Part shown: positions 2,682 through 31,060 of the stretch, piece after piece
Layout: every line of letters begins with the position of its first letter
Position numbering within the stretch: position 1 is the first letter of the stretch
NCBI GenBank assembly: GCA_907165135.1
Contig: OU015569.1
Coordinates: forward strand, 3,937,001-3,970,000
Reading direction: 5' to 3'
DNA length: 33,000 nucleotides
DNA from: Oikopleura dioica
Lineage: Eukaryota > Animalia > Chordata
The notes under the pieces: generated by a model
Seen by the model: the letters and a program-made list of their open reading frames with translations, nothing else
The model's database searches: none
Told to the model about the DNA's origin: nothing
Translations under genes and position numbers: made by a program

Positions 2682-5042
2682 TCAGCTTAACGTGATCGTA
2701 CTCTGTTTACGCTGATCCGGAATGCTTTGTCTCTTTTCTTTCTTACGGTCATTCTGGTTCTGTCTTTTGTAGTTTGGAAAGCTCGGCATTTCTGCACACG
2801 TACAAGGCAGTGGATTCTCTTAAAAAAAGAATAACTGCTGATCTAATCTTCATTATTCAATAGCTGTAGATGAAATAAATTCCTAAATTTTTAAGTCGAT
2901 TTAAAAGTCAATAAAATACCTCTGAAGTACTGATGTTTGAGTGCCGCTGCTGCTGTAATCCTCTTTGAAGGGCAATAGGCGAGCATGTTGTTGAGTAGTC
3001 TAAATCCAGCTTCGGAATTCCACCAAGGAAATTTCGACTTCAAATTATTGTATGGCTGGACTTTCAGCGATCGACCTTTTTTGGCTCTAATTTCTTGAAA
3101 TATATTAAATTTACCAATTGGTAGAATTACTTCTAGAGGGACGTGAAAATAAAGAATCTATAAAGCATTTCCTTTTACAAGCGGAAGATCGCCATAACCA
3201 GGCCAAATAGTTTCATTAGGGCTTCCAATCGTATCTATTATCTTGTCTATAAGCTCAATCTCGTTTCGGGCGGGAAAAAGGGGGTCGTGAAGAAGAAGCT
3301 CTGACAGAACGCACCTAAACAAAATGGCATTATTCGGAGATAAAATTTAAATAGCCATTCATCGATTGTTTTCTTAAATTCGCTTTCAATACATACCCGG
3401 CCGACCAAAGATCCATAGCCGTGGTGTGAATGCTATCGCCGAATAACACTTCGGGCGCTCTATACCACAAAGTAACGACTTTTGGCGTCGATGGTTTCCG
3501 AGGAGTACCAAACGATCTTGCCAGTCCAAAATCTGCTATTTTCAGCACTCCGTCGTCTAGACCACATAAATCAATCAGGCGCATTTGCTTTTTTTACCTG
3601 TCAGAAGAAGATTTGAGACTTTAATATCCCGATGAGCGATGAACTTCGAATGCATGAATTCTAGCCCCCTCAAAACTTGAACCATCAGGCACTTTACTTG
3701 ATCTATGAGCAGGTGATCAATGTGTAATTGGGCCACGAGTTTACCTTCTAAAAACGGCTTGGACATGTGGTCGAGTAGCGATCCCAAATCGTATTGACAG
3801 TATCCCATGACGAGGAATAGACTCTCCAGTTGTTGTCCAACGGCGACTGCCTGTAGTAAGTCACAATCAAAAAGAGGCGGAAAAGAGGAGAGTTGACTTA
3901 CCCTTAGATCGACAATGTTTTCGTGCTTGAGCGAGAAAAGAAGGGAGATTTCTCTAATCGAGCTGACTGGAATTCCGTCCCGTTCTTTCTCCATTCTGAC
4001 TTTCTTCAGCGCCACGATTTCGTCGTCAGCCGTGTCTCTCGCTCTGTACACAATGCCGTAAGTTCCTTCTCCGATTCGATTTAGCTTTTCGAATTCTGTA
4101 ACTGGTCTTTTCGCTCGTGTTCCGGAAATTGTCCATAAATGTCACTCGAGTTTTGTTTTTTTCAAATTTAGACGGCGAGGACATTTCTCGACAAGTCCTA
4201 CAACGACCCATTTTGAGTCTCTCGGGGATCTCACTCTGCTCCAATGTTTTTACGTCGACAATTGGGGGCAGCTTTTTGGGCGGCTTCGAGTAGGAACGTG
4301 AGGATGACACATTCGACGCTTCATCCTCCGATTTTTTTCGACTTTGCGCGCGGCGACTGTCTACTTTGGCTTTTTAATACAGCCCTATTAATTCCAGTTG
4401 CAACTGGACCAGTGTCCACTGAGATCGATCTATTCCTGATCATCGATAATTCAAAAAAGCGTTCCTTGGTTATCTTCGTAGGAGAGATTTCTCTTCCGAT
4501 CTTTGTGAAGTGATTTTCGACGCTCATCCTGAATCAACCGTTAGCGATTACAAAAGTGCACAAGTCGTCAAGTTATTTGAACAGGCGCAAGTTTTCTGAA
4601 ATGAAACTTCTCGAAATCGGACGTTACCTTTTTGGTTTCACTCTTTTTGAGTCTTTTTTAGGCTCAATGATCAATCTCTCGTTCATTCTAACTCGTTAAA
4701 AGCAAAAAATCTGCAGAGAAGATTCTTGATTTTGATTTTTAGTTTCTGTAAACCCAAATCGCCCTGAAAATGCGAATATGCGGTTACGTCAGAAATGGGC
4801 AATAGTGAGCCGTTCCTGGAAGAATCTACTTGGATAGATTGGCCTCTTGCATCTTTCTGTACTTGACTCCGACTGGACAGGCCATGATGGGATGCTCGCC
4901 CGATGCTACTAGAGCCGTAATAAGCAGCGTTGCTTGAATTAGAGCCTGTAAGACCCTTGTAGCTCGTCTGCGCGGGCTTGTTCTTCGGCTCCCGCTTTGG
5001 GAACTGCGCCACGGGTACGTAGTTGTCGTCCCCTCTGATCAT
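2682..5042 (-). CDS. CDK10: Cyclin-dependent kinase 10; 5' exons above about 4530 uncertain
   Basis: [49 protein letters not shown] (PISSLRE-type), [54 protein letters not shown]; stop TGA at 2682-2684. The start at 5042 (MIRGDD) is tentative. Confidence 0.9.
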
Positions 5043-10069: not shown

Positions 10070-12578
10070 TTACTGGATGTTGAGAACGCGATTCGGTGGA
10101 ACTTTTGCGAGTTCTAAGTAATTAGAGCAGCTCGAACTGATGCAAAACAAATTTGAACATCTCAAATCGTTGTTGCTAGTTCAAGTCTCTGTGCCAGGAA
10201 TTAATCTTAATACGTATGTACTTCGAACTTTGCCTTGAAGGTCTTTGTTGACTTCCATCGTCACGTACTGGTGCAATAGAACACGGAGTTCTTCGTTCTG
10301 TGTCTGCAAGCTTTCGTTGTCGCTGACGAGTCTGAAAGACAATTAGAAACGTCAAGTAGTGTGTATTCGGGTACTTACGAGGCGCGCTGGTTGAGACACT
10401 CAAAATAACTCTGCTGAGCTTTGTAAAGAGCGTTCCAGAGGATAAGCTTCTTATCGTTGATAATGTGAGACCTAAAAATATAAAGATTGAAGAGTTCAAA
10501 TCAATGATTTCAGTTCTCAGACATTCAAAGCTTGAGCACCGATAATGTGTATTTTTAGAAGTTTTAAGAGCCACGTCGCGACAGATTTTATTGTTCGCGA
10601 AAGAGGTTCATAAACATTTAAAATCGTTAGCAAGTGGGTTCGAATTGTTCCAATGATTTCCTACCTTTCCTCCCAGACTTCCCACTTGATGTCTCCCTTC
10701 GAATGGTTCGAGCTTGTGAGGCTAGTTTTCTTTCTCCTCAGCATCGCATTGTTGATGTAACTGAGAATGCCCTAAATTGAGAATTGATGAACGGCGTAAG
10801 AATGAGATCTAATCATGTCAAGTGCCCTATTCGCGTTAATGGTTATTTTATCTTCGGGTCAATTAAGTGGATAGCAAAAATACCTCGAGAGCATTATTTG
10901 GATCGGCTTTTTCACCGATCGCCCCGTAGTTCGTCATTTCCGCCATCAGCAGTTTGAGTTCAGACTCGTCGTCAATGTTGAGCGCGGCGAAAATCGCATC
11001 GATAAGAATAAGTCGTTTTTCTTCTGGCTTCAGCGGCTCGATAAGCTTGTTAAGCATGGCTTCAACCAGGAACGAGCACTCTGAGCAGAGCAAGTCAAAT
11101 GCCTGGTCAGCTTGCTTCTTGGGGATGCTAGTTTCCCCAGCAAGGATTTTTTAGCATACTCCATAGCAGATGGTCTATGTTGCTTGGAAGTGCTCTTGTT
11201 GTATTCGGGCATGACAAAGTCTACTCCAAGCTGCTGCTCGGAAATGATCTTGTCCGCCTGAAGCGTTCGATTCACCAATTCCATAAGTTCCTGCATGTTC
11301 ATCTCCCAGACCTCTCGGAACTTTTTGTTGTCAGCATCCTCGAAATGCTTCTTTTTCTTTTGGAAGTCGGCGTACTGTTGAAGCAGTCGTCGGTAATCTT
11401 CTCGAAGGTTGCATCCTTCTACGCGGGCTTTTTTCTCTTGCGCCTCGAGCTTTGATCGTAGACTGTTCAGCTGATCCTGCATTTTTGTCAAGCGACGCTT
11501 CTGCTGGCTGTTAGTGATCGTATTTTCGTCATCGCGTTTTTTGAGGACTTGGAAGTTATACTCGAGCTTCTCCTGGTTCAGCTGGTATGAAGCGCGCATA
11601 CTTTCAAGCTGTTGCTCCAGAACTTGCACGTCAGTTTCCAGCTTGATCTTTGTAGTGTGAAGGTCTTCAGCGTCCCGCAGACGGAGCCTGTCGATTTCTG
11701 ACTGTAAAATGTTTTTAAAGCGGAAGAGAGTCCTAAAGAGTTACCTGGAGTTCATCGCGGAGCTCGAACCTGTCTTCGAGATAGTTATTTTCGGTTTTGC
11801 TGAGATGTGCAGCCTTTTCACGCCACAAGTCAGTTGCTTCAACATCTTTGAACTGAGCGTCCAGAGCAGCGATGACTTGTTTTGCTTCGTCTCTGAAAGC
11901 CCGGTCCATCGTCCTGTACTGTTCCACCATTCGCTGTGTGATAATATCGAGATCATCGTACTGCTTCTTCAAGGTCTTGACGTACTCATCTTCGCTGCAT
12001 TTCAGCTCTCGATTCAGCTCAACTAGAAAAATCGTTAACTTTTAGACCAAGAGATTAGAATCACACCTATAAGCTGGTTTTTAGCGCTCAAGACTTCTTC
12101 GCATGCTTTGCATTGGTCAGTAAGCGCGTCCCGAAGTTCCTGAGGAACATCTCTTGCAAGCGATCCTGTCCATCTTCGGCGGATAGCCTCGAATTTCTCC
12201 AGATTAGCGTCAGCTTCATCCGCCAAGATTTTCATGCGACGCTTCTTCTCTTCGTGGACTTCTTTTCTCCTCTCGAACTCTCGCGCAACAGCTGCAATTT
12301 CAACGTTCGAGACGAGTTCAGTGCCTGCCTTTCTCAGAAGCGCGAGGCGGCCCTCCGACACTTTCATCTGGGGGTTCACATCGATTTGTTTCTTTTCCTC
12401 CTCGCTGAAAAGACGCGTATATTTTTTCGGAAAATAAGAAAACTTACATGACCAAGTCGGGCTGCTCCTTTGCTCGGACTCTCTGCTTGATTCTGTCCCG
12501 ACGCTCTTGCATTCTCTTCTCTTTCTCTTCTTGCTCTGTTCCCACCACCCCATCGTCATTGCGAAGTCCGGAAAACAT
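10070..12578 (-). CDS. DRC1: Dynein regulatory complex subunit 1 (CCDC164)
   Basis: TTTTCAG|A-ATG start; KRMQERRDRIKQR, DVPQELRDAL, EYVKTLKKQ, KIKLETDVQVLEQQLESMRASYQLNQEKLEYNFQVLKKRDDEN, LLCSECSFLVE..IDAIFAAL; C-terminus LRVLLHQYVTMEVNKDLQVPP. Confidence 0.95.
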
Positions 12579-12603
12579 TCTGAAAACGCAAATTCCACTC
12601 GCG

Positions 12604-12832: not shown

Positions 12833-13679
12833 ATGGAAACCTCGACTGTTCCCATCCACCTTGCCATTGTTAATACGACTTCAGTTTTTGAAGAATATGA
12901 AGGCGAATATTGGACACTTATGGGTATTTAGCATTAGCATTAGAAGGCTAAACTAGCTTGAATGGACCTTTCAGGATGCTCTATTTTTCTTACGCTTATG
13001 GGCTTCTTTTGGCTCCTTTCAACAGTAGGAGGAATCGGAACCATCAAAGATCTACTATGCGGGTAAAAAATTATTGTCTTCAAATATCTTAACATTTGTT
13101 CAAGTTTGGCGTGTTCTGCTGCCTGCGAAGGATGGAAAAATGTTGATTACATCACTGAAAGCGTGACGTTCTTTAGCTATTGGACCTGTTTGCCATGGAT
13201 AACCTTTACTTATTGCCTATTGACGGTAAAATGATATGGGATTCAAAATGTATCAAAATTTTGCAGCTTATAAATGGCATTCTGGGAATCTGCGCCGTTA
13301 GATTTGAGCATCTTCCGTCACTCCAAGCTTTCATGATTTTCACAGTGGTCTCCCTTGTTGTTGGTATTCTACTATTTTGGTTCTACGCATGTATCAGTGT
13401 GGCATACTCCTGTTGCCGCTGTTGCTGTGAGAAAATCATTGAAGAAATAAAGGTATTTAAAAAAAAGTTCTTATATCATCATGGTACTTTCAGGAAATGG
13501 ACGAGATGGAAAGCCAACCGGTGAATAACAATCCCACAGAAGGACAGAACAAGAAAACTGAAGAGCCCGTGGAACATAACTATTGTTGTAACTTTTTCCT
13601 ACACTTTGCAGTCCCAATGATTCTATATTTTATCTGTCTATGCATTATCCTTAGCGTTGGCTGGTCCTTTGCCTTTTGA
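12833..13679 (+). CDS. Orphan cysteine-rich membrane protein with about 4 TM helices, 5 exons
   Basis: METSTVPIHL...YWTLMG|CSIFLTLMGFFWLL...LCG|LACSAACEGW...FTYCLLT|LINGILGICAV...SCCRCCCEKIIEEIK|EMDEME...VGWSFAF*. GT-AG introns keep frame; AATAAA follows the stop. Confidence 0.7.
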
Positions 13680-13787
13680 AACCTCTTGAATAAACGCAAG
13701 CACGAATTCTAAGAGAAGTGGTCACAGAGTTATAAAAATAAAGTATATATTAGTAGCATAGAAAAATAATAGAGGCGCAGGATCAAA

Positions 13788-14701
13788 TTAGAGCTGGTAA
13801 GGGATATCGTCCTGCTTGTCGAGTTGGTGAACCAAGGGAGTAGAAAACTTTGCGCTTCTCTTGAATTCTTCGCCAGCTGTTCCACCGACGATCTGTCCTT
13901 TCGTAGCGCTGAAAACAACGAATAATCATTTGATTTTACAAAGCAGACTTACGTTTTGTAAGCTTCATGAAGCTGGCTCCAAACAGTGATGGGCTTTTCG
14001 TTGAGGCAAGAGGAGTCGAACTGAGGTGGTCCCGGCTGAGTAGGGATGCGAGGATTCGCGCGTCGCGCTTCAAGGCGTTGCCTTTCCTCCTAAAACCGTA
14101 GTTTAGTATCAAAGACAAGAGTGTTAAAAAAAGAGATTCATGCACTGATTTTGATGTTTCATCAAAGGGCTAGAGTAAATGTAAATAAATGAGGTAAAAG
14201 CATGCATTAAATGTGTTAAGAGTCTAACCTCTTGTTTACGCATTTCCTCTGCTCTCTAAAAATAAAATTGAAAGGCTCTGCGATACTTGAAGCGAGTGAG
14301 TTCTACCTCCTCGTCAAGAACTTCTTGCAGGGCATCTTGATATCTCTTACGGGTCAAAACGCCGGCCTGAGCCTCTTTGGGGCGGCTATCGGGCTGCTTG
14401 TAGTAATCGGCGGTAGTTGTCAAGAACTGGTGATCAGCCTTTTCTCCAGTAATCTAAAAGATCGCTCATCACAGCTCATAACTACTCAATCTATCTTACC
14501 AGATTTTTGTGGCCATTTTTAAGCTCTACGCTGGTCGAAACCTCACCGTCAGATGATCTATTCAATCTATCCTGAAATAACCAGCTAAGTCTCTCCTGCA
14601 AGAAAAACACGCTAACTTACCTCGACCCAGTTTTCTAAGAGAGTCCGACCGCCCGCATTAGGACTTCTAATCAAGTTGCAGCCAAAGGGAGGGGCGCTCA
14701 T
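13788..14701 (-). CDS. SPAG8: SPAG8-like axonemal microtubule inner protein, 5 exons
   Basis: TTTTAG|A-ATG; MSAPPFGCNL..GRTLLENWVE|DR..KNGHKNL|IT..LTTTADYYKQP.., NEKPITVWSQ, FKRSAKFSTPL. These match the SPAG8 blocks LLxNWxEER, GHxGLLT, EQPxTFW and FRKNxxFSTP. Not in the ORF track. Confidence 0.8.
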
Positions 14702-14861
14702 TCTAAAAATGTAAAAATGTTAATTCAGAAATTCGCGGTTTGTTCGTTTTTGTTTTATAAAAAAAGATATCAATATTAACTATATTTAGCACATCAACGA
14801 AACCCGTTGTTACAGAAATGTAGAACGAAGTCGAGGTGTGGATGAGTTGTCTTGCTTCAAT

Positions 14862-16217
14862 TTATCGTTGTCGGGGCTTGTTGAGCTTGCGAGAGACCTT
14901 GCCCAGATCTTGGTACTGGGTGGTGTACTCGGAGCGGAACACGATTCGACGACGGTCTTTATCAGTTCGCTCGACACAGTGCTCTCGCTGCATTCCCTTC
15001 AGATCTTCTTCGTCGATGTAGTTGGCCTTTAAAATTGATTTAATAAAAGAAAACGGCAATTAAAAATTACCTTGAAGACAGTCTCAACGCTGCTGTGATG
15101 CTGGAGTGGCAAGTGCCAGTGTCCGCTACCAAGGGAGGTGATGAGACGATCAGCCCAAACTGGACGTTGCTTGTCTGTTGGAATATACATATGCGGTGGG
15201 TAGCACTAGAAAGCGTCACATGTATAAATCAAATTCGCTCGCATACCTTGAAAAATCGGCTGTTAGTGGACTCGTCTCCCATTCGATCGGAGAGCCCCTG
15301 TTTGAGACAGTTCTTGCTATCTGTTGGCTTCCCTTATTGCTTCCACGAACGATTCGGCACTGAAAAACTCGAATTCATATTTAAAATAATTTTAAAGACT
15401 TACATCGGTCTCGAAAATGGGGAAGAGTGGTTCCTTCTTTGGCAAATTTTTCATCATCTCGAACAAATCGACTTCAAGCTCTGGCTTCTGTTCGCCGCTC
15501 TGGGGCTCCAAAAGGGGCACGTTGAAGACCTTCTTCTTTGGAAGTTGGCTTCTTGATAGCTGGCGAATTCGAGGCGTCGATGGCTTCTTCAACTCTTCTT
15601 CACTTTCTCGGGGAGGGAGAAGAACCAGCTAAAAAAATCAATGTTTTCTAGAGCAGACTTTGTTTACTTTCCACAATTTGGGTGAAACTTACCGGTTTCT
15701 TGCGCTTATTCTTCATAAGATCAATAATTTGGTCTTCGTGCTGCTTGCATTCAAAACGGCGAAACTGCTCCCGCTGCGCATTACGCTTTTCTGCGTCTGT
15801 GTTCAATCGAGATTGGCTAAAATTCGATGTCAAACACGCAGAATTATTATCTTACCGAATGCAGCAATATGTCTGGCCGATTTTTTGAATTTCAGCATTG
15901 GTGAGGCCAAGGCGTGGACCACGGCTCTTCTCGAATTCAGTAAATGAGCCTTCGTTAGGAGCACCGGCCCGTGTGTAGCGTCGAAAAGACTGAGGAGGAA
16001 GTTTGGGATTTATCTGCCGTTCTCTTTCCTACGAAGACTTTCAAAGCTGAATAATAAAAAAGTGACTTACCAGCCCAAGATGCGCCTTGTTTAGATTTAT
16101 CCTCTTGAACCCACTTCCTCGACTCTGCGACTGTTTGACGCCCTGGTGGGGCCTTGCACCTGAAAATACTCAAATACTTCTCTCTCGATTAAAAACGAAA
16201 AAAATACCATTCTCCAT
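14862..16217 (-). CDS. Uncharacterised multi-exon protein with C-terminal Mn/SAXO-like motifs
   Basis: MEN|GARPHQG..HLGL|ERERQINPKLPPQ..YCCIR|QSRLNTD..KKP|LVLLPP..FETD|..RFFK|CYPPH..SSVETVFK|ANYIDEE..IVFRSEYTTQYQDLGK..QR*. Canonical splice sites, with one frame ambiguity near 15330. Confidence 0.7.
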
Positions 16218-16428
16218 CCCTCGAAGAACTGTGCTGAGCCCCTTCTGACAAATTCGGAAAACATCAATATTACTTCTAGAAACTTTTTTCCATTTTTTTT
16301 TTTATTTCAGCGCTTTTGTGAAAATATAAATTCGTTTATGGTAGCAAAATAGAAGAATTATTCGGAAGTAGAAATCAAAAGGTCAATAGTAATAGTACAG
16401 TAAATTTACAGTAAATAGAAAAACACAC

Positions 16429-17278
16429 TTATTGAGCGGTAGCAACTGTAATTGGAGCGATGTGGTGAGCCTTCCATCTAGAAATCGAGGCTTTATTTTC
16501 ATCCTCTTCTTCTTCGCCGTCTTCAACCACGATGCTCACGTACTCGCCGTGTTGCTCGCAGCCAATGTCGAAAACGTATTTTCCAGGACTGAAGGAAATA
16601 CGAAATTTCAGTTTTTCATCATTTAAACCGTACCCGCTTATTTGGTTGGTCTTCCAGCCGCCCTGGTAGCGGTGATTTTTGTGAATGAGCTCAGCACCTC
16701 CATTTGCCTGGTCACTTTCCCACTTTCCTTTGAAGACTGTGCCGTTCTCTCTGAAAAGAAGATGTAAAGAATTCGGAACTAGTTTAGCTGTATTTACTTG
16801 AACGTGTAAGTACCATCGCCGTGGCGTTTATCATCTTTGAACTGGCCTTCGTAAGTGTCACCGTTGACATATGTGTACGTTCCTGAGAGTATTTTTGACT
16901 TCGTTTGTTTTACGAAAAAAGTTTAGTAACGTACCGATTCCATTTTTCTTGTCGTCTTCCCACTGACCGGAGTAAACTGAGCCGTCTGGGTAATACATTT
17001 TTCCCTCACCGACCTTTTTATTTCTCGAGTAGGATCCGACATATCGTGCTCCACCCTAAAATCTAAGCTCCACGGATAATTCTTAGTCTTTATACTTTGA
17101 ACTTGTAGACACCTTCGCCATGCCTTTGTCCCTTTTCGTACTGTCCTTCGTAGACATCTCCGTTGGACAAAGTCGCCTTCCCGGTGCCGTGCCGTTCCCC
17201 CGCTTCGTTCCGCTCGCCATCGTACTCGCCAAAGTAGAACTCTTGTCCGTCCTCGAATTCTGCCTCGGAATCCGACAT
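16429..17278 (-). CDS. RSPH1: Radial spoke head component 1 (MORN repeats)
   Basis: [42 protein letters not shown], repeated YxGxW/F...HGx[17 protein letters not shown], acidic stretch, RWKA C-terminus. Confidence 0.93.
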
Positions 17279-17351
17279 TTTAGTTCTTAGCTGAATCAAA
17301 ATAAACTGATGGATGAAGGATGAATATCTTAAATGTACAGGCAGAGCGAAG

Positions 17352-17909
17352 CTAAAAATCATCATGAGGGGGCATTGCTTTTATTATTTCCTCTTCAGCC
17401 TTTTTTATCAGCTCTGGATGCTTTGCGGCCATCTTCCGTTTGATAACTTTGAGCCGTTCGTAAGTGGCGTCCATGTCAGTCTTGAGACTGAGAACAACAG
17501 CAGTGTGGTCGTTTAGGCGTTCTGCTAGAATTGCGTAGTGGTTTCCGACGATCAGATTAGCGTTGTGAACCATTTCTCCTGTCTTCTCAAATCTAAAGCG
17601 ATTTACCAGCTTTTTATGATCAAGATAGGAAGAAAATTATGCTTGGCAAAGTGGGGATAAAATGATCACAAAGACGACTCGAGCGATAGGATGACCTTTC
17701 AAAATTATAAATTATAAAAATAGCTGCTACAATGTTGACTTGTTGGATGAAGGCAATTACTTGCCGAACAAATTTCAACTCGCTTACCTCAGAGCAGTAT
17801 CCCGCTGCGCACGTTCTACTTCTTCTATGTCCTGACGACAGAGGATCTGCGTAATATGCTCTGGAGGAGCATTACTGCCACTTTCATCGTGCTCTTGATT
17901 GCGACTCAT
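17352..17909 (-). CDS. KXD1: KxDL-motif protein 1 (BORC/BLOC-1 associated), 2 exons
   Basis: [16 protein letters not shown]|[12 protein letters not shown]...[32 protein letters not shown] matches KXD1 RFEKTNEML...[29 protein letters not shown]. Confidence 0.9.
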
Positions 17910-20592: not shown

Positions 20593-22688
20593 TCATCGTT
20601 GTAACGGTGCCATTACGGCCTTATCTTCGGCGGCAGCTTTTTTATGTTTCTGGTACTCTTCGGCGGGCAAATAGCCGACATAGGCGAGCATGTAAACGGC
20701 TCCTTTCAGTCGCCCCGCAAGAAGAGGAGCATACGAAGAAATGATGCCTTCCGTCCAAGACGAGGCTGGATAAATAAACATGGCAGCGCTGAAAATAATA
20801 AATCAGTTTTGTCGAGGAAATCAAACAAACTGGAATAAGTGAATGTTCGATAAATGGTGGATAAATTATAAAACTTTACCCTTATGATTTGAGCATGAAA
20901 ATAATACTTAACCAGCGCTAGAATGAAAAGAATGTTTAAGAGGAAATCTTCTCGAATAAAATTAATTACCGTTCTTCACTGTTAACATAAACTAGTCCAA
21001 CAGAATTCGTGAGTTGAAAATATTGATTTAGGCTTTTGATGCTGCGCTGTGAGCCTCGGCCTTTTGTTATCAACAAGAATGCGCCGACTTTGCCTTGTTT
21101 CGCTTTTTCGGACATAGAATTCGCAAGATTGTGGTTGAAAGTAAGACGATGCTTTATGCTCATTTTACTGAGGGAAGAGAATGATAGGGATAGTCGTTTC
21201 TGGTCGCCAGCGATTAGCGAGAAACGAGCGGAGATAGGCTGCTTCTTGATCTCGAGCTCGCCTTCCCAACAATCGCCCAGAGCTGAGTGAAGCTCGAGAA
21301 GACTGCCAGATTCGCGTGCTCGTCGTTCATGATAGGCAGACAACGAAGAGAATGTACCGATCTTTTCAGCTCCCTCCTGTGTAAACGCGTAGTCGACGCG
21401 ACAACGTCGCTCTGAACCAGGAAGCCGCTTCCCTCGGAGGGCGGAGATAGCGTAAGTCACACTGTCAATAGTCTGGAAAGTAACTTCTGCCCAATCGGAG
21501 TTCTCGTTTTTCCTTGTGGAAGATGTTATTATTATATAAATGAGAAGACGCTCACTTGATGTTATAGATGGAGCCGTATTTACTACATTCACGCTGAAGA
21601 AGAGTTGTAGTTACTTCTGGGCCGAGGCCACCGACCCATAAAACTTTACTCGGAACAGGTCTTCCCCAGCCCACACGAATCGCGTTTCTATGAAGTACTT
21701 TTCCGTTCATCGCTAACTTCGCTTTCCAGGCCATGTTCAAATCCAAGTATTTCACGAAGCCAAAGTTGGAGTGATTTGCATTTCGTGCTTGTTTTATGTC
21801 GCATTCAAGAATATCGCCATATTCTTCAAATTCTGAGTAGATGTCTTCCCGATTGAGGCTTCGATCCAAATTTCCCAAGAATAATGAGCGAGTTGCTCCT
21901 GGATCGTCTTCTGGTGGGTAATCTTCACCGGGCCTAAATCAAAACGTTTCGCGAGGAATCTCGGCAAACTCTACCTATGAGCCCTTCCACCGGGAAAGAA
22001 TTTTTCGCCTTCCAGATGTGTTCGCTTTCGACCCGCTTCATCGCGAGGAAATTCAAAGTCCGGCTTGATTCCTGGCCTCGTTGCGTACCCACGCGGCTCA
22101 TCTCTCCCTCTTCGTTCGCTACTCCGGTAGCGCTCGGTTCGCTCTTCGCGTGGTGGCGATCGCCTGGATCTGCTGTGTGACCTATACAAATCCTACATTC
22201 TTGCTCTTCAATGTCTATTTTTACCTGTATTCGTCCCTGTACTCGGGACTGTGCCGGTCTCTTTTATATCTATGATAGTCATCGTAGCGCCGGTCATCGT
22301 CGTGAGGGGACCTTCTGTAAATAAGAGTTAACGAAAAAGTCGAAAAGCAAGCTTACCGATCTCGTTTGTGACCAAGCCAAACATCGATTCGCAGTCTCCG
22401 CTCATTCATTACAAGGTGGCCACGGGCTGCCTTCGCGTCTTTTGCAGAATCGTGGTGCGCGAATTCGATGAAGCCGACGCGTTCGTCGTGGTCGTCTTTC
22501 CCCATACGAACCTAAACTCCCGTTTCGAATCTTACTTAAACAAGCAGACTTACTCTGCATTTTCCATATTTTGAGTATTCTTCTTGGAGACAGTCCACCA
22601 CGTCATTATCCTTTATTTCACCGGGGATGTTTCGGACAACAAGATTTCGGTAGTACGGCTCATCTTCGTCCGATCGATATCTTTTCAT
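20593..22688 (-). CDS. RBM15: RBM15/Spenito-like RNA-binding protein (3 RRM + SPOC)
   Basis: RRM1 ERVGFIEF..AKAARGHLVMNERRLRID; PPEDDPGATRSLFLGNLD (RRM2); RVGWGRPVPSKVLWVGGLGP..ALRGKRLPGSERRCRVDYA (RRM3); SPOC WEGELEIKK..LNQYF..VGLV. Confidence 0.92.
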
Positions 22689-22779: not shown

Positions 22780-24168
<1,389 letters not shown>

Positions 24169-25162: not shown

Positions 25163-26160
25163 TTAATGATTGGCAGCTTGGGTAGCTTCTTTCCCGATTC
25201 TGTAGCCAAGGAGTTTGTGCCAGTCGATCTTTGTCTTGGTCATTGGCAGCTGCCGTCTGAGTGCTTTGAAAGTAGTGTCCGACATTTTCACGTAGTTGTC
25301 CGAAATGGCGCTTTGGTAGTCGCCCTCAGAAGTCTTCACATATTTGATCAGATCCGCCACGAACTGAAAAATAAAAGTAAAGCAAAGACGATGATAAACG
25401 GCACCTGATTTCTGTCGTAGCACATTTCGTGTTCGTATTCTTTTTTGCAAAGCAGTTGGACGTTTCCGTTCTCGTAGTAATGGACTTGTATGCGCAGCAG
25501 ACCCGAGATCGTCGCCTGGCCATCATTGATTTCAATCGTCCAGCATGATCGCTAAACAGCGAAATTAGCGAACTAGAATTACGAAAAAGGGATTACCCAA
25601 CGGCCGCCCCAGTGATTTCTCGACTGGAATTCGTGATCTTCGATGCAGATGATGACTGTGATTTTGGAGGCTTCTGACTGACCGTAGACAGAGGTGGTGC
25701 CATTTGGGTAATGAGCGTTGACGTAGGCTTCCACCGCGGCCTCGACTTCTGCCCTTAGCGGTTCGCTCTTTTCGTCCGTCGGGATCTGCTGGAGGTCGCT
25801 GGCCGCGCGCTGCATGTGATGGTAGTCGAACGACTGAAACAATAATTATCGCTAATTGGAGCTTAAGTGACGCACTTGTTTCGACTTGGGATCGTAGTAT
25901 CGACCATTTGGAAGTGCGGCGGCAGGCGTCAGCAGGCACTTCTCTCCCGTGCCCAGTTCGACGGGGAGGAACTGTTCGACGTTCCACTGCGGCACCGCAA
26001 TCCGACAGGCCTCTTTCATCTGATTTTCATTGTGCAGGATCGTCGCCACGTCGTTGTAAACCTCGTTGAATTCGCCGGGCGGAGCAAATTTGAGGAAGTC
26101 GGCGGCCATCTCTATCTTCGTCGCCTCGCTGATCGGCTCTTCGTCGTACGAATCTGCCAT
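25163..26160 (-). CDS. CAPZA: F-actin capping protein alpha subunit
   Basis: [54 protein letters not shown]|[36 protein letters not shown]. Confidence 0.97.
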
Positions 26161-26743
26161 TTTTTTATTTTCTAAACGCAGTTTTCTCAAAAGAAATTCA
26201 AGATGGCGAAAAAGAGGTGATAAAACACTCAGCGCTGATGATACATACAAGAAGCCGTAAAAATTATTATCTGCGATCTATGCGCATTTTCAGTAGTCAA
26301 TTTAATAACTAGAACATTTATCAGATAAATTGATAATAGACATTTAACTGACTTGATTAACTACGCCATGTTCTTGATGATTTAAAAATAAGAATGAATA
26401 AGGTTAGAAATTGACTGATTTGAGCGCAGAATTAGAGAGAACTGAGAGGGCGCTAGAATAATTTCATCAGGGCGGGCGGAGTCTCTTTTCCTCTTTTGAT
26501 AATTTGATATTGATGGCGACTGGAACTAATGAAGCCAATGGCTGCCGAAACTGGTGTTTTCTTTTATTTCTCTTTTCTGGCGACTTTTTGGAAAAATAAT
26601 TCTCTTGGGGGCTTTCGGTGATTGGGCGTTTCGACGAGAGCCTCTATTGGGCGTTTTCAAAAAGAGCCATTTTAGAGGAAATTCAAAGGCAAACGCGAGA
26701 TCCTGGACGAAGAAAAACGGAAACGCAAATTTGATTAATCGAA

Positions 26744-29789: not shown

Positions 29790-31060
29790 TCATCGACGAC
29801 CCTCGGCAAATTTCTTCCCTTTCTTCGCGAGCTCTGCGAGGACAGCTTCCTTCTCGGTAATGATGGGCAACTTGGAGATCGACTCATTCTAAAGAATAAT
29901 TAACTTAAATCGAATGTGGTCGTTGAACGTACCGATGTAGAGGCATACTTCTGCTTGGTGGCTGTGTACTTCTTCTTGTGCGCACCAAAATGCACCATAA
30001 ACAGGCTTTTCGCCAGTAAATTGGTCACATTCTCGAGATCTGAGACGGAGTATTTCGAGGTGTGCTCAAGAATCGGCAGCCATTCTCCCTCGCTAATGAG
30101 GTTGATTGACAGCCACAAGGCACCCGCAGCCACTAAGGACGGCTTCATGCTTGCCAAATCGTAGTCCATCAAAGCAAGCTCGCACAGGTACTAAAAACAA
30201 ACGTCAACAAAAATAAGAGAAGCATTAACATTACCTTTGACAGGATGTACTCGAGGATCGATCTTGTCCTCTGCGACTCTTGAAAATCGTCGCAGGAACT
30301 CAAGCGAGTATGCGAAAGATAGTTCGCAATCCAGACGACCAAGAACTTCCAGCTCCATGTCTTTTATCTCGTCTAAAATAGCTTTTATTTTCAGTATTTG
30401 TCTCAATTTCGCACCTTCTGTGTAAGCTTTGTCACAAACGTAGACAAAGTCGCTGACAGCTGGCGAGTAGATCTCCTCATTTTTCGATGCAAGCATCATG
30501 CATGCAACGCCGACAAGTTGCATTTGCGACTTCTCAACAGTTTCCACGCGCTGAAGATAGCGATCCATGTACGCGACGGATAGGAACAGTGTGTCGTTGA
30601 GGAGACGAAATCGTCGCCCAACTTGCACCATCCAGTCAGTAAGGATCTGACGCATCTTCGGCGAGGCGCGGTGACCGTGGTGAGCCAGAAAATTAGGTCG
30701 CACTTCCTTCGAGTGCTCGAGGAAGCGCAAGTACCCATAAACTTGCTCGACGTGGTCTTTGCACCACCGTTCGTCCGACTGAAATGAGGTATGAATCATC
30801 CAGATTTAAAAACAATAAATTTACCTCATCCTTCACTTCAATTTTCTTGAGCTGGGCTTCTAAAGCCTGCGCTCCGCTGTCAGATGCTTCCCAGGCCATC
30901 TCGACAGTCTCATTGGGAGTTATCTCGGTAGGTCTGATGGCCTTCACCGGACCGGTCTCCTGGACATTCACATCTCGATTGAGAGCTAAAAAAGTAAAAC
31001 ACGCTCACTTTTACACTATATCTCTGTCTTACCCTGAAGTTGTTCCCGGTCAGTATTCAT
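29790..31060 (-). CDS. CCNB: B-type cyclin; 5' end uncertain, frame anomaly at about 30235-30250
   Basis: D-box-like REQLQALN; cyclin box MRQILTDWMVQVGRRFRLLNDTLFL..MDRYL..MQLVGVACMMLASKNEEIYSP..DFVYVCDKAYT; FLRRFSR; YLCELALMDY; KYAST; stop TGA at 29790-29792. Confidence 0.92.

Follow-up and report, generated by a model that had tools for sequence, protein, structure and literature searches.

Mn-repeat proteins of microtubules include MAP6, MAP6D1, SAXO1/2, SAXO5/TEX45, TEX26, C2orf73, and MDM1, together with FAP363 of Chlamydomonas. Here, we examined a gene of the appendicularian Oikopleura dioica, a planktonic tunicate, that can be compared with these proteins. The gene, referred to below as the candidate, was found in a stretch of 33,000 nucleotides of GenBank assembly GCA_907165135.1 (contig OU015569.1, positions 3,937,001 to 3,970,000 of the forward strand; the window, whose own numbering is used throughout), where it lies on the minus strand between RSPH1 and a gene most like SPAG8. 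The published minimal Mn syntax is [TS][TS]x4[YF], and the combination of an NWE motif with an Mn unit occurs in SPAG8, CFAP107, CFAP95, and CFAP68 (PMC10973386). A sequence-only reading of the locus had proposed an uncharacterised axonemal microtubule inner protein (MIP). From its sequence and surroundings, we tentatively read the candidate as a lineage-restricted, spermatogenesis-expressed microtubule-binding protein of the Mn type, possibly an axonemal MIP.

Three Mn-like units in an invariant C terminus

The candidate is a real, spliced gene, expressed as spliced polyadenylated RNA. Two transcript-derived sequences served as references, namely P0006, a protein of 344 aa in the true frame, and L003, a spliced RNA contig from another lineage with a coding sequence (CDS) of 1035 nt. 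Three Mn-like units were located in P0006:

Residues 238-247: unit 1, STNSRFFKCY, spanning the exon 6/7 joint (SRFFKCY)
Residues 283-293: unit 2, SSVETVFKANY, spanning the exon 7/8 joint (SVETVFK/ANY)
Residues 320-328: unit 3, (IV)FRSEYTTQY, within exon 8

Both motifs originally noticed, SVETVFKANY and FRSEYTTQY, are thus present, and SRFFKCY adds a third. All three units fall within the invariant C terminus, ~35-45 residues apart, and when aligned on h-F-[KR]-x-x-Y they look like internal repeats. The pattern [ST]x[YF]xxx[YF], which came from the sequence-only reading and was picked post hoc after the sequence had been seen, occurs three times in P0006 against 0.13 expected from shuffles (P ~2e-4). 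The published syntax [TS][TS]x4[YF] is matched by STNSRFF (238-244) and SSVETVF (283-289), two occurrences against 0.25 expected (P 0.025, shuffling).

The part of the protein that carries the units is also the part that has changed least. Between the gene model and L003, which represent two deeply diverged lineages (86% nucleotide identity), 127 codon differences are synonymous and 11 nonsynonymous (Nei-Gojobori dS ~1.1, dN/dS 0.017 overall), and all 11 amino acid changes lie within residues 1-205. The C-terminal 139 residues (206-344) have accumulated 59 synonymous differences and 0 amino acid changes. When exon 8 was compared with reads of a third variant, 12 of 12 differences were on third codon positions. 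The candidate is under strong purifying selection. For RSPH1, a core axonemal protein, the same pair of lineages gives ~11 changes over 219 residues, so the constraint on the candidate is no weaker than on RSPH1.

Searches for relatives and comparison with known families

The composition of the candidate protein (R 10.4%, K 9.5%, P 7.2%, GRAVY -1.1, pI 9.9) agrees with its first description as hydrophilic and Pro/Arg-rich, and its only two tryptophans are in PVWADRL and GHWHLP. An AlphaFold2 model from the single sequence reached a mean pLDDT of only 36.5, with nothing >70 and with the motif helices lacking any confidence, which is too poor for use. The description had also noted that no globular domain was recognizable, and the Pfam scans found none. 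The protein is predicted to be basic and largely unstructured alone. Strong constraint without a predicted fold fits a long interface with a highly conserved partner.

Pfam scans at E <= 10 of every exon, of the deposited protein (P0001, described below), of P0006, and of P0006:200-344 assigned the candidate to no family and returned only chance matches to Trp_halogenase and Toxin_33 (Waglerin). When exon 7, exon 8, the complete protein, and its C-terminal domain were compared with Protein Data Bank (PDB) chains, including solved doublet microtubules, only chance matches to Affilin and Trp halogenase came back. Word searches with exon 8, P0001, and the C-terminal region of P0006 found nothing beyond O. 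dioica sequences. With exon 8 as the query, 1.84 billion representatives were searched exhaustively, which recovered only the candidate itself and four long repeat proteins, the latter taken for low-complexity chance matches. A metagenome scan returned six loci, all from O. dioica and all encoding the P0006 protein or nearly so; identities of 65-69% in that scan represent tblastn reading through introns. In the candidate's own genome (64.3 Mb, 19 contigs searched), exon 7 and exon 8 each occur as a single copy, and the two queries revealed no paralogue. As far as these sequence comparisons reach, the exhaustive one covering exon 8 alone, the candidate is an orphan, as had been suspected, and has relatives in no other species.

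When language-model features were used instead, the named nearest neighbors among the clusters listed were CFAP68, a SAXO5-like family, and DUF4722, with scores of 0.80-0.87. DUF4722 could not be tied to any named protein. In the literature, nothing was found on Oikopleura MIPs or sperm proteomes.

The candidate shares several traits with Mn-repeat proteins. It is basic, appears unstructured alone, and has several [ST]-rich units ending in aromatics (STNSRFF, SSVETVF, SEYTTQY). It differs from them in having no profile match, only three units with the third outside the strict syntax, an extension of its own in each unit (h-F-[KR]-x-x-Y), and no orthologue found outside O. dioica. The homology to SAXO and CFAP families that the sequence-only reading had suggested looking for did not emerge, whether to SAXO, SAXO5, or CFAP68 or to a MIP chain of solved structure. 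The SAXO1-2 (PF05217) and SAXO5-like (PF15373) profiles had no match anywhere in the genome, which does not show that these families are absent from it.

The NWE-module seam MIPs (SPAG8, CFAP107, CFAP95, and CFAP68) are small and disordered proteins of sperm or cilia with two Mn units, as the candidate may be; one of them is the candidate's downstream neighbor, and CFAP68 is its best named language-model neighbor among the clusters listed. Unlike them, P0006 contains no N-W-x-E (N-terminal motif [ILV]-L-I-G-N-W-x-E), and the SPAG8-like neighbor shares no similarity with the candidate. An origin of the candidate as a tandem duplicate of this neighbor was ruled out, the local alignment score being no better than those of shuffles. 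Membership of the candidate in the CFAP68 family was not supported either. The CFAP68 profile (PF06608) scored 45.5 bits in the same genome at C5:14195655-14195801 (L004), a locus separate from the candidate, where the O. dioica CFAP68 orthologue carries the NWE motif TLVGNWNE, and the Pfam scan of P0006 was negative. Judged by profiles, the candidate is not a demonstrable SAXO1-2, SAXO5-like, or CFAP68 member, and lacking the NWE motif it stands outside the NWE family; at most, it resembles an Mn-motif protein.

An operon with RSPH1 and a SPAG8-like gene

The genes around the candidate were identified as follows:

17352-17573, minus strand: last exon of a gene with a KxDL motif (PF10241, 27.4 bits)
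16435-17278, minus strand: RSPH1 orthologue with MORN repeats, upstream cistron (PDB RSPH1 E 4.7e-73; MORN E 3.5e-27)
13788-14704, minus strand: SPAG8-like gene, downstream cistron, 194 aa (model from RNA joints; trans-splice acceptor 14704, ATG 14701)
~10863-12598, minus strand: DRC1 orthologue (E 7e-13 against DRC1 chains; NYD-SP28 domain)

The candidate was therefore correctly placed between RSPH1 and SPAG8, with SPAG8 here standing for an NWE-motif MIP gene most like SPAG8. The encoded protein has the NWE motif TLLENWVE followed by the Mn unit TTTADYY. Exon 1 had a single PDB match, to sea-urchin SPAG8 (204 aa) at the same position (E 0.64), and two other exons, one of them exon 2, gave no support for SPAG8 identity against PDB. 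Because the exon 1 match alone supports SPAG8, the safe name is SPAG8-like NWE MIP.

RNA joins the three genes. Contigs L003 and L006 contain a spliced leader (SL) joined just ahead of the RSPH1 ATG, the spliced RSPH1 CDS, a spacer of 217 nt, and the candidate CDS, and L006 extends past the latter into the start of the SPAG8-like gene. The loose end of the reads at 14704 is also a spliced leader, which we take to be that of Oikopleura dioica, so that the SPAG8-like gene is trans-spliced 158 nt past the candidate stop. The hallmarks of an O. dioica operon were all found, comprising a common strand, gaps <=500 bp (217 and 158 nt), polycistronic RNA, and SL trans-splicing of cistrons; the leader was seen at the RSPH1 and SPAG8-like starts, and none was observed on the candidate's own mRNA. 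RSPH1, the candidate, and the SPAG8-like gene make up one operon as the term is used for O. dioica. Other lineages (L006, L008, P0007) keep the three genes in this order. Operons of O. dioica are rarely conserved between lineages (PMC11067885).

The KxDL gene lies directly upstream and stops ~50 nt before the RSPH1 trans-splice site (17278-17300 region). It is probably a further upstream member of the same operon, which would then mix ciliary and non-ciliary genes. DRC1 lies 2.3 kb further on, past the SPAG8-like gene, and brings the axonemal genes within 7 kb to three.

A conserved TCTAGA element ahead of the candidate

TCTAGA has been published as the spermatogenic core promoter of O. dioica, where it precedes sharp male-specific transcription starts by 40-50 nt (Danks et al. 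2018, PMC6389100). Of testis-specific genes, 73.5% have it, compared with 11% of those specific to the ovary and 2.5% of those specific to the trunk (PMC6389100). It marks operon-internal promoters too, and its AGA sometimes doubles as a trans-splice acceptor (PMC6389100). Two elements in the spacer between RSPH1 and the candidate bear on this:

16275-16280, minus strand: TCTAGA, 63 nt upstream of the ATG, a candidate male-specific core promoter and/or trans-splice acceptor (TCTAG/A)
16226-16240, minus strand: conserved block TCAGCACAG, at the predicted transcription start, 40-50 nt downstream of TCTAGA

TCTAGA sits in a T/A-rich context inside an invariant block of 18 nt, and the rest of the spacer has diverged. 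Its distance to the ATG is exactly 63 nt in 5/5 sequences (the window, L003, L006, L009, and L011). Over the whole window, TCTAGA shows no enrichment, with 9 found against 11 expected. The arrangement resembles that of described O. dioica TCTAGA operon promoters in that the element stands at a fixed, conserved distance within an operon and its AGA is a possible acceptor.

By this comparison, transcription is predicted to start near 16236, inside the block TCAGCACAG, and the candidate is probably expressed in spermatogenesis. No TCTAGA precedes the SPAG8-like gene; hence, a male-specific transcript from the candidate's element would carry the candidate and SPAG8 together. The locus is a tidy example of an O. 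dioica operon whose putative male-type promoter, internal to the operon, is positioned to drive a candidate-SPAG8 transcript.

A proposed microtubule binder and its rival readings

For the candidate, we infer expression in the testis, binding to microtubules, and a luminal (MIP) location, which together would describe a protein that acts in sperm, and possibly in other cilia, as an Mn-kind binder of the microtubule lattice. It is encoded by the middle cistron of the RSPH1 - X - SPAG8 transcription unit and, during spermatogenesis, would be transcribed from its own TCTAGA-driven internal promoter, with a start ~19 nt before the ATG and a transcript that includes SPAG8. If they behave like the Mn units of MAP6/SAXO, SPAG8, CFAP95, CFAP107, and CFAP68, the C-terminal units may each form a short helix (~7 residues in the MAP6/SAXO class) docked in a groove between alpha- and beta-tubulin, on the luminal face in the case of a MIP. 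The basic N-terminal half would run along the protofilament. If this tentative reading holds, the candidate is a new lineage-restricted protein of the already known Mn-motif kind.

The proposal of an uncharacterised axonemal MIP is upheld in part. Mn-like motifs are present in the most constrained part of the protein, the neighbors are axonemal, and to these are added co-transcription with both neighbors and the conserved TCTAGA; homology to a MIP is not among the findings. Several further points weigh against microtubule binding as well. No sequence homology to any known MIP or microtubule-associated protein (MAP) was found. A match to the Mn syntax is weak evidence alone because the motif is short, the looser pattern was chosen after the fact, and the third unit does not fit the strict published syntax. 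Shuffled proteins, too, often attain language-model scores of this size. As for the neighborhood, genes sharing an O. dioica operon are only loosely related in function, with weakly correlated expression (PMC11067885), and the gene directly upstream, KxDL, is non-ciliary.

A more specific version of the microtubule-binding reading is possible, though we consider it unlikely. The candidate would then be an appendicularian-restricted MIP of the sperm flagellum with three Mn-like units, sharing its transcript with SPAG8 through a male-specific promoter inside the operon. In other animals, SAXO-type proteins, undetected in this genome, hold a luminal site that the candidate might fill here. Were it a MIP, the set of luminal proteins in the chordate sperm axoneme could gain lineage-specific members from the same short tubulin-docking motif, and its 139 invariant residues with three motifs would offer a compact, testable example.

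It is quite conceivable that the candidate is instead a conserved, disordered, basic protein, probably of the male germline, whose function (nuclear, chromatin, RNA-binding, or adaptor) is unrelated to microtubules, the motifs being coincidental and the position a matter of operon packing; we hold this explanation, too, only tentatively. The lack of homology to MIPs and MAPs, the loose functional relations within operons (PMC11067885), and the KxDL gene in the same gene string all favor it, as do basic runs resembling a nuclear localization signal (KNKRKKP and PKKK). TCTAGA marks most testis genes, among which axonemal ones are a minority, and with several hundred axonemal genes among ~17,000 (an estimate), a few axonemal-x-axonemal arrangements would be expected by chance. 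Set against it are the clustering of three motif copies in the invariant C terminus (P 2e-4 and 0.025, shuffling), the presence of RSPH1, the SPAG8-like gene, and DRC1 within 7 kb, a gene order kept across the lineages of a scrambled genome, and two MIP families, CFAP68 and SAXO5-like, among the named language-model neighbors in the clusters listed.

A third explanation, that the protein is axonemal or centriolar and non-luminal, for example a radial-spoke or nexin-dynein regulatory complex (N-DRC) adaptor or a MAP of the outer surface, under common regulation with RSPH1, SPAG8, and DRC1, appears improbable. The neighborhood and co-transcription would suit it, and motifs of the Mn type are likewise found in proteins, MAP6 and MDM1 among them, whose binding sites are elsewhere on microtubules or at centrioles (PMC10973386), but no similarity to radial-spoke, N-DRC, or other axonemal chains was found among solved structures, and nothing specific indicates an outer-surface site.

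Gene structure and the deposited model

The microtubule-binding reading, like its alternatives, concerns a gene of eight exons at 16217-14862 on the minus strand, coordinates that correspond exactly to its ATG and stop. Its introns measure 39-64 nt, all GT..AG. The L003 CDS aligns with the gene model codon for codon and gapless, so that all splice joints agree with P0006 and L003. The joints e2/e3, e3/e4, e5/e6, e6/e7, and e7/e8 are borne out by contigs of metatranscriptome run X1 (at least 99% identity), and the exon 4/5 joint was inferred from GT..AG together with codon-for-codon collinearity with L003. The exons, and a one-base shortfall within exon 6, are as follows:

16208-16217, minus strand: exon 1; ATG 16217-16215, same MENG... 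start as in P0006, in-frame stop upstream
16071-16168, minus strand: exon 2; donor 16071 backed by the joint 16027→16070, cut +1
15856-16028, minus strand: exon 3; RNA joints 16027→16070 and 15816→15856 (X1), sole open frame
15693-15816, minus strand: exon 4; joint 15816→15856, basic, predicted helical, with KNKRKKP
15404-15628, minus strand: exon 5; joint 15359→15404, collinear with L003, a Pro/Lys/Glu-rich linker
15247-15359, minus strand: exon 6; joints 15359→15404 and 15205→15247, 113 nt long (window) or 114 nt (RNA)
15330-15331: one-base shortfall; GGG on the minus strand of the window, GGGG in RNA
15071-15205, minus strand: exon 7; joints 15205→15247 and 15025→15070
14862-15026, minus strand: exon 8 with the stop; ANY (15026-15018) completes motif 2, FRSEYTTQY at 14939-14913

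The first Mn-like unit begins at the 3' end of exon 6 (STNSRFFK, 15270-15247) and is completed by the CY that opens exon 7, which closes with the second, SSVETVFK (15094-15071). Exon 2 can begin at either of two acceptors, which lie 9 nt apart. Use of 16159 yields 344 aa (MENGARP...), the form of P0006 and L003, and use of 16168 yields 347 aa (MENVFSGARP...), as in L007 and, with the joint 16168→16208, in another lineage's reads. Both acceptors occur in RNA of other lineages. The first 118 nt of L007 contain no in-frame ATG and have no genome match; its 5' end is for the latter reason taken as probably that of a chimeric contig.

The product deposited for the locus is CAG5095889.1 (P0001, 332 aa), from Oidioi.mRNA.OKI2018_I69.XSR.g14386.t1 of the Okinawa assembly OKI2018_I69. 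Taken at its letters, the window loses the frame within exon 6, and a stop follows in exon 8. An RNA contig of X1, from the same lineage (at least 99% identity), has an extra C behind 15330, which is a fourth G on the coding strand. With this base added, exon 6 measures 114 nt, the frame stays open to the stop at 14862, and the translation after the base is that of P0006. P0006 is in frame throughout, and P0001 is out of frame at ~residues 218-270, rejoining before GHWHLPL. CAG5095889.1 therefore has ~50 wrong-frame residues because the assembly is short of one base, and these would mislead homology or proteomics searches relying on that protein. We take the missing base for a homopolymer error of the assembly, which a cited title describes as nanopore-based, or at most for a private allele.

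That the candidate is a broken gene or an annotation artefact, as the interrupted frame of exon 6, the stop in exon 8, and a deposited model forced off the true frame might suggest, is highly improbable given that same-lineage RNA (at least 99% identity) has the missing base, other-lineage transcripts are intact, dN/dS is 0.017, and the shortfall sits in a homopolymer run of such an assembly.

Other genes of the window

Between the SPAG8-like gene and DRC1, an apparent small plus-strand gene for a membrane protein was noted at ~13180-13680. The remaining genes of the window, all on the minus strand, are ordinary and non-ciliary by Pfam:

3330-4051, minus strand: protein kinase
21555-21878, minus strand: RRM protein
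22783-23829, minus strand: Ostalpha-type solute transporter
25855-26250, minus strand: F-actin capping protein alpha subunit
30194-30799, minus strand: cyclin

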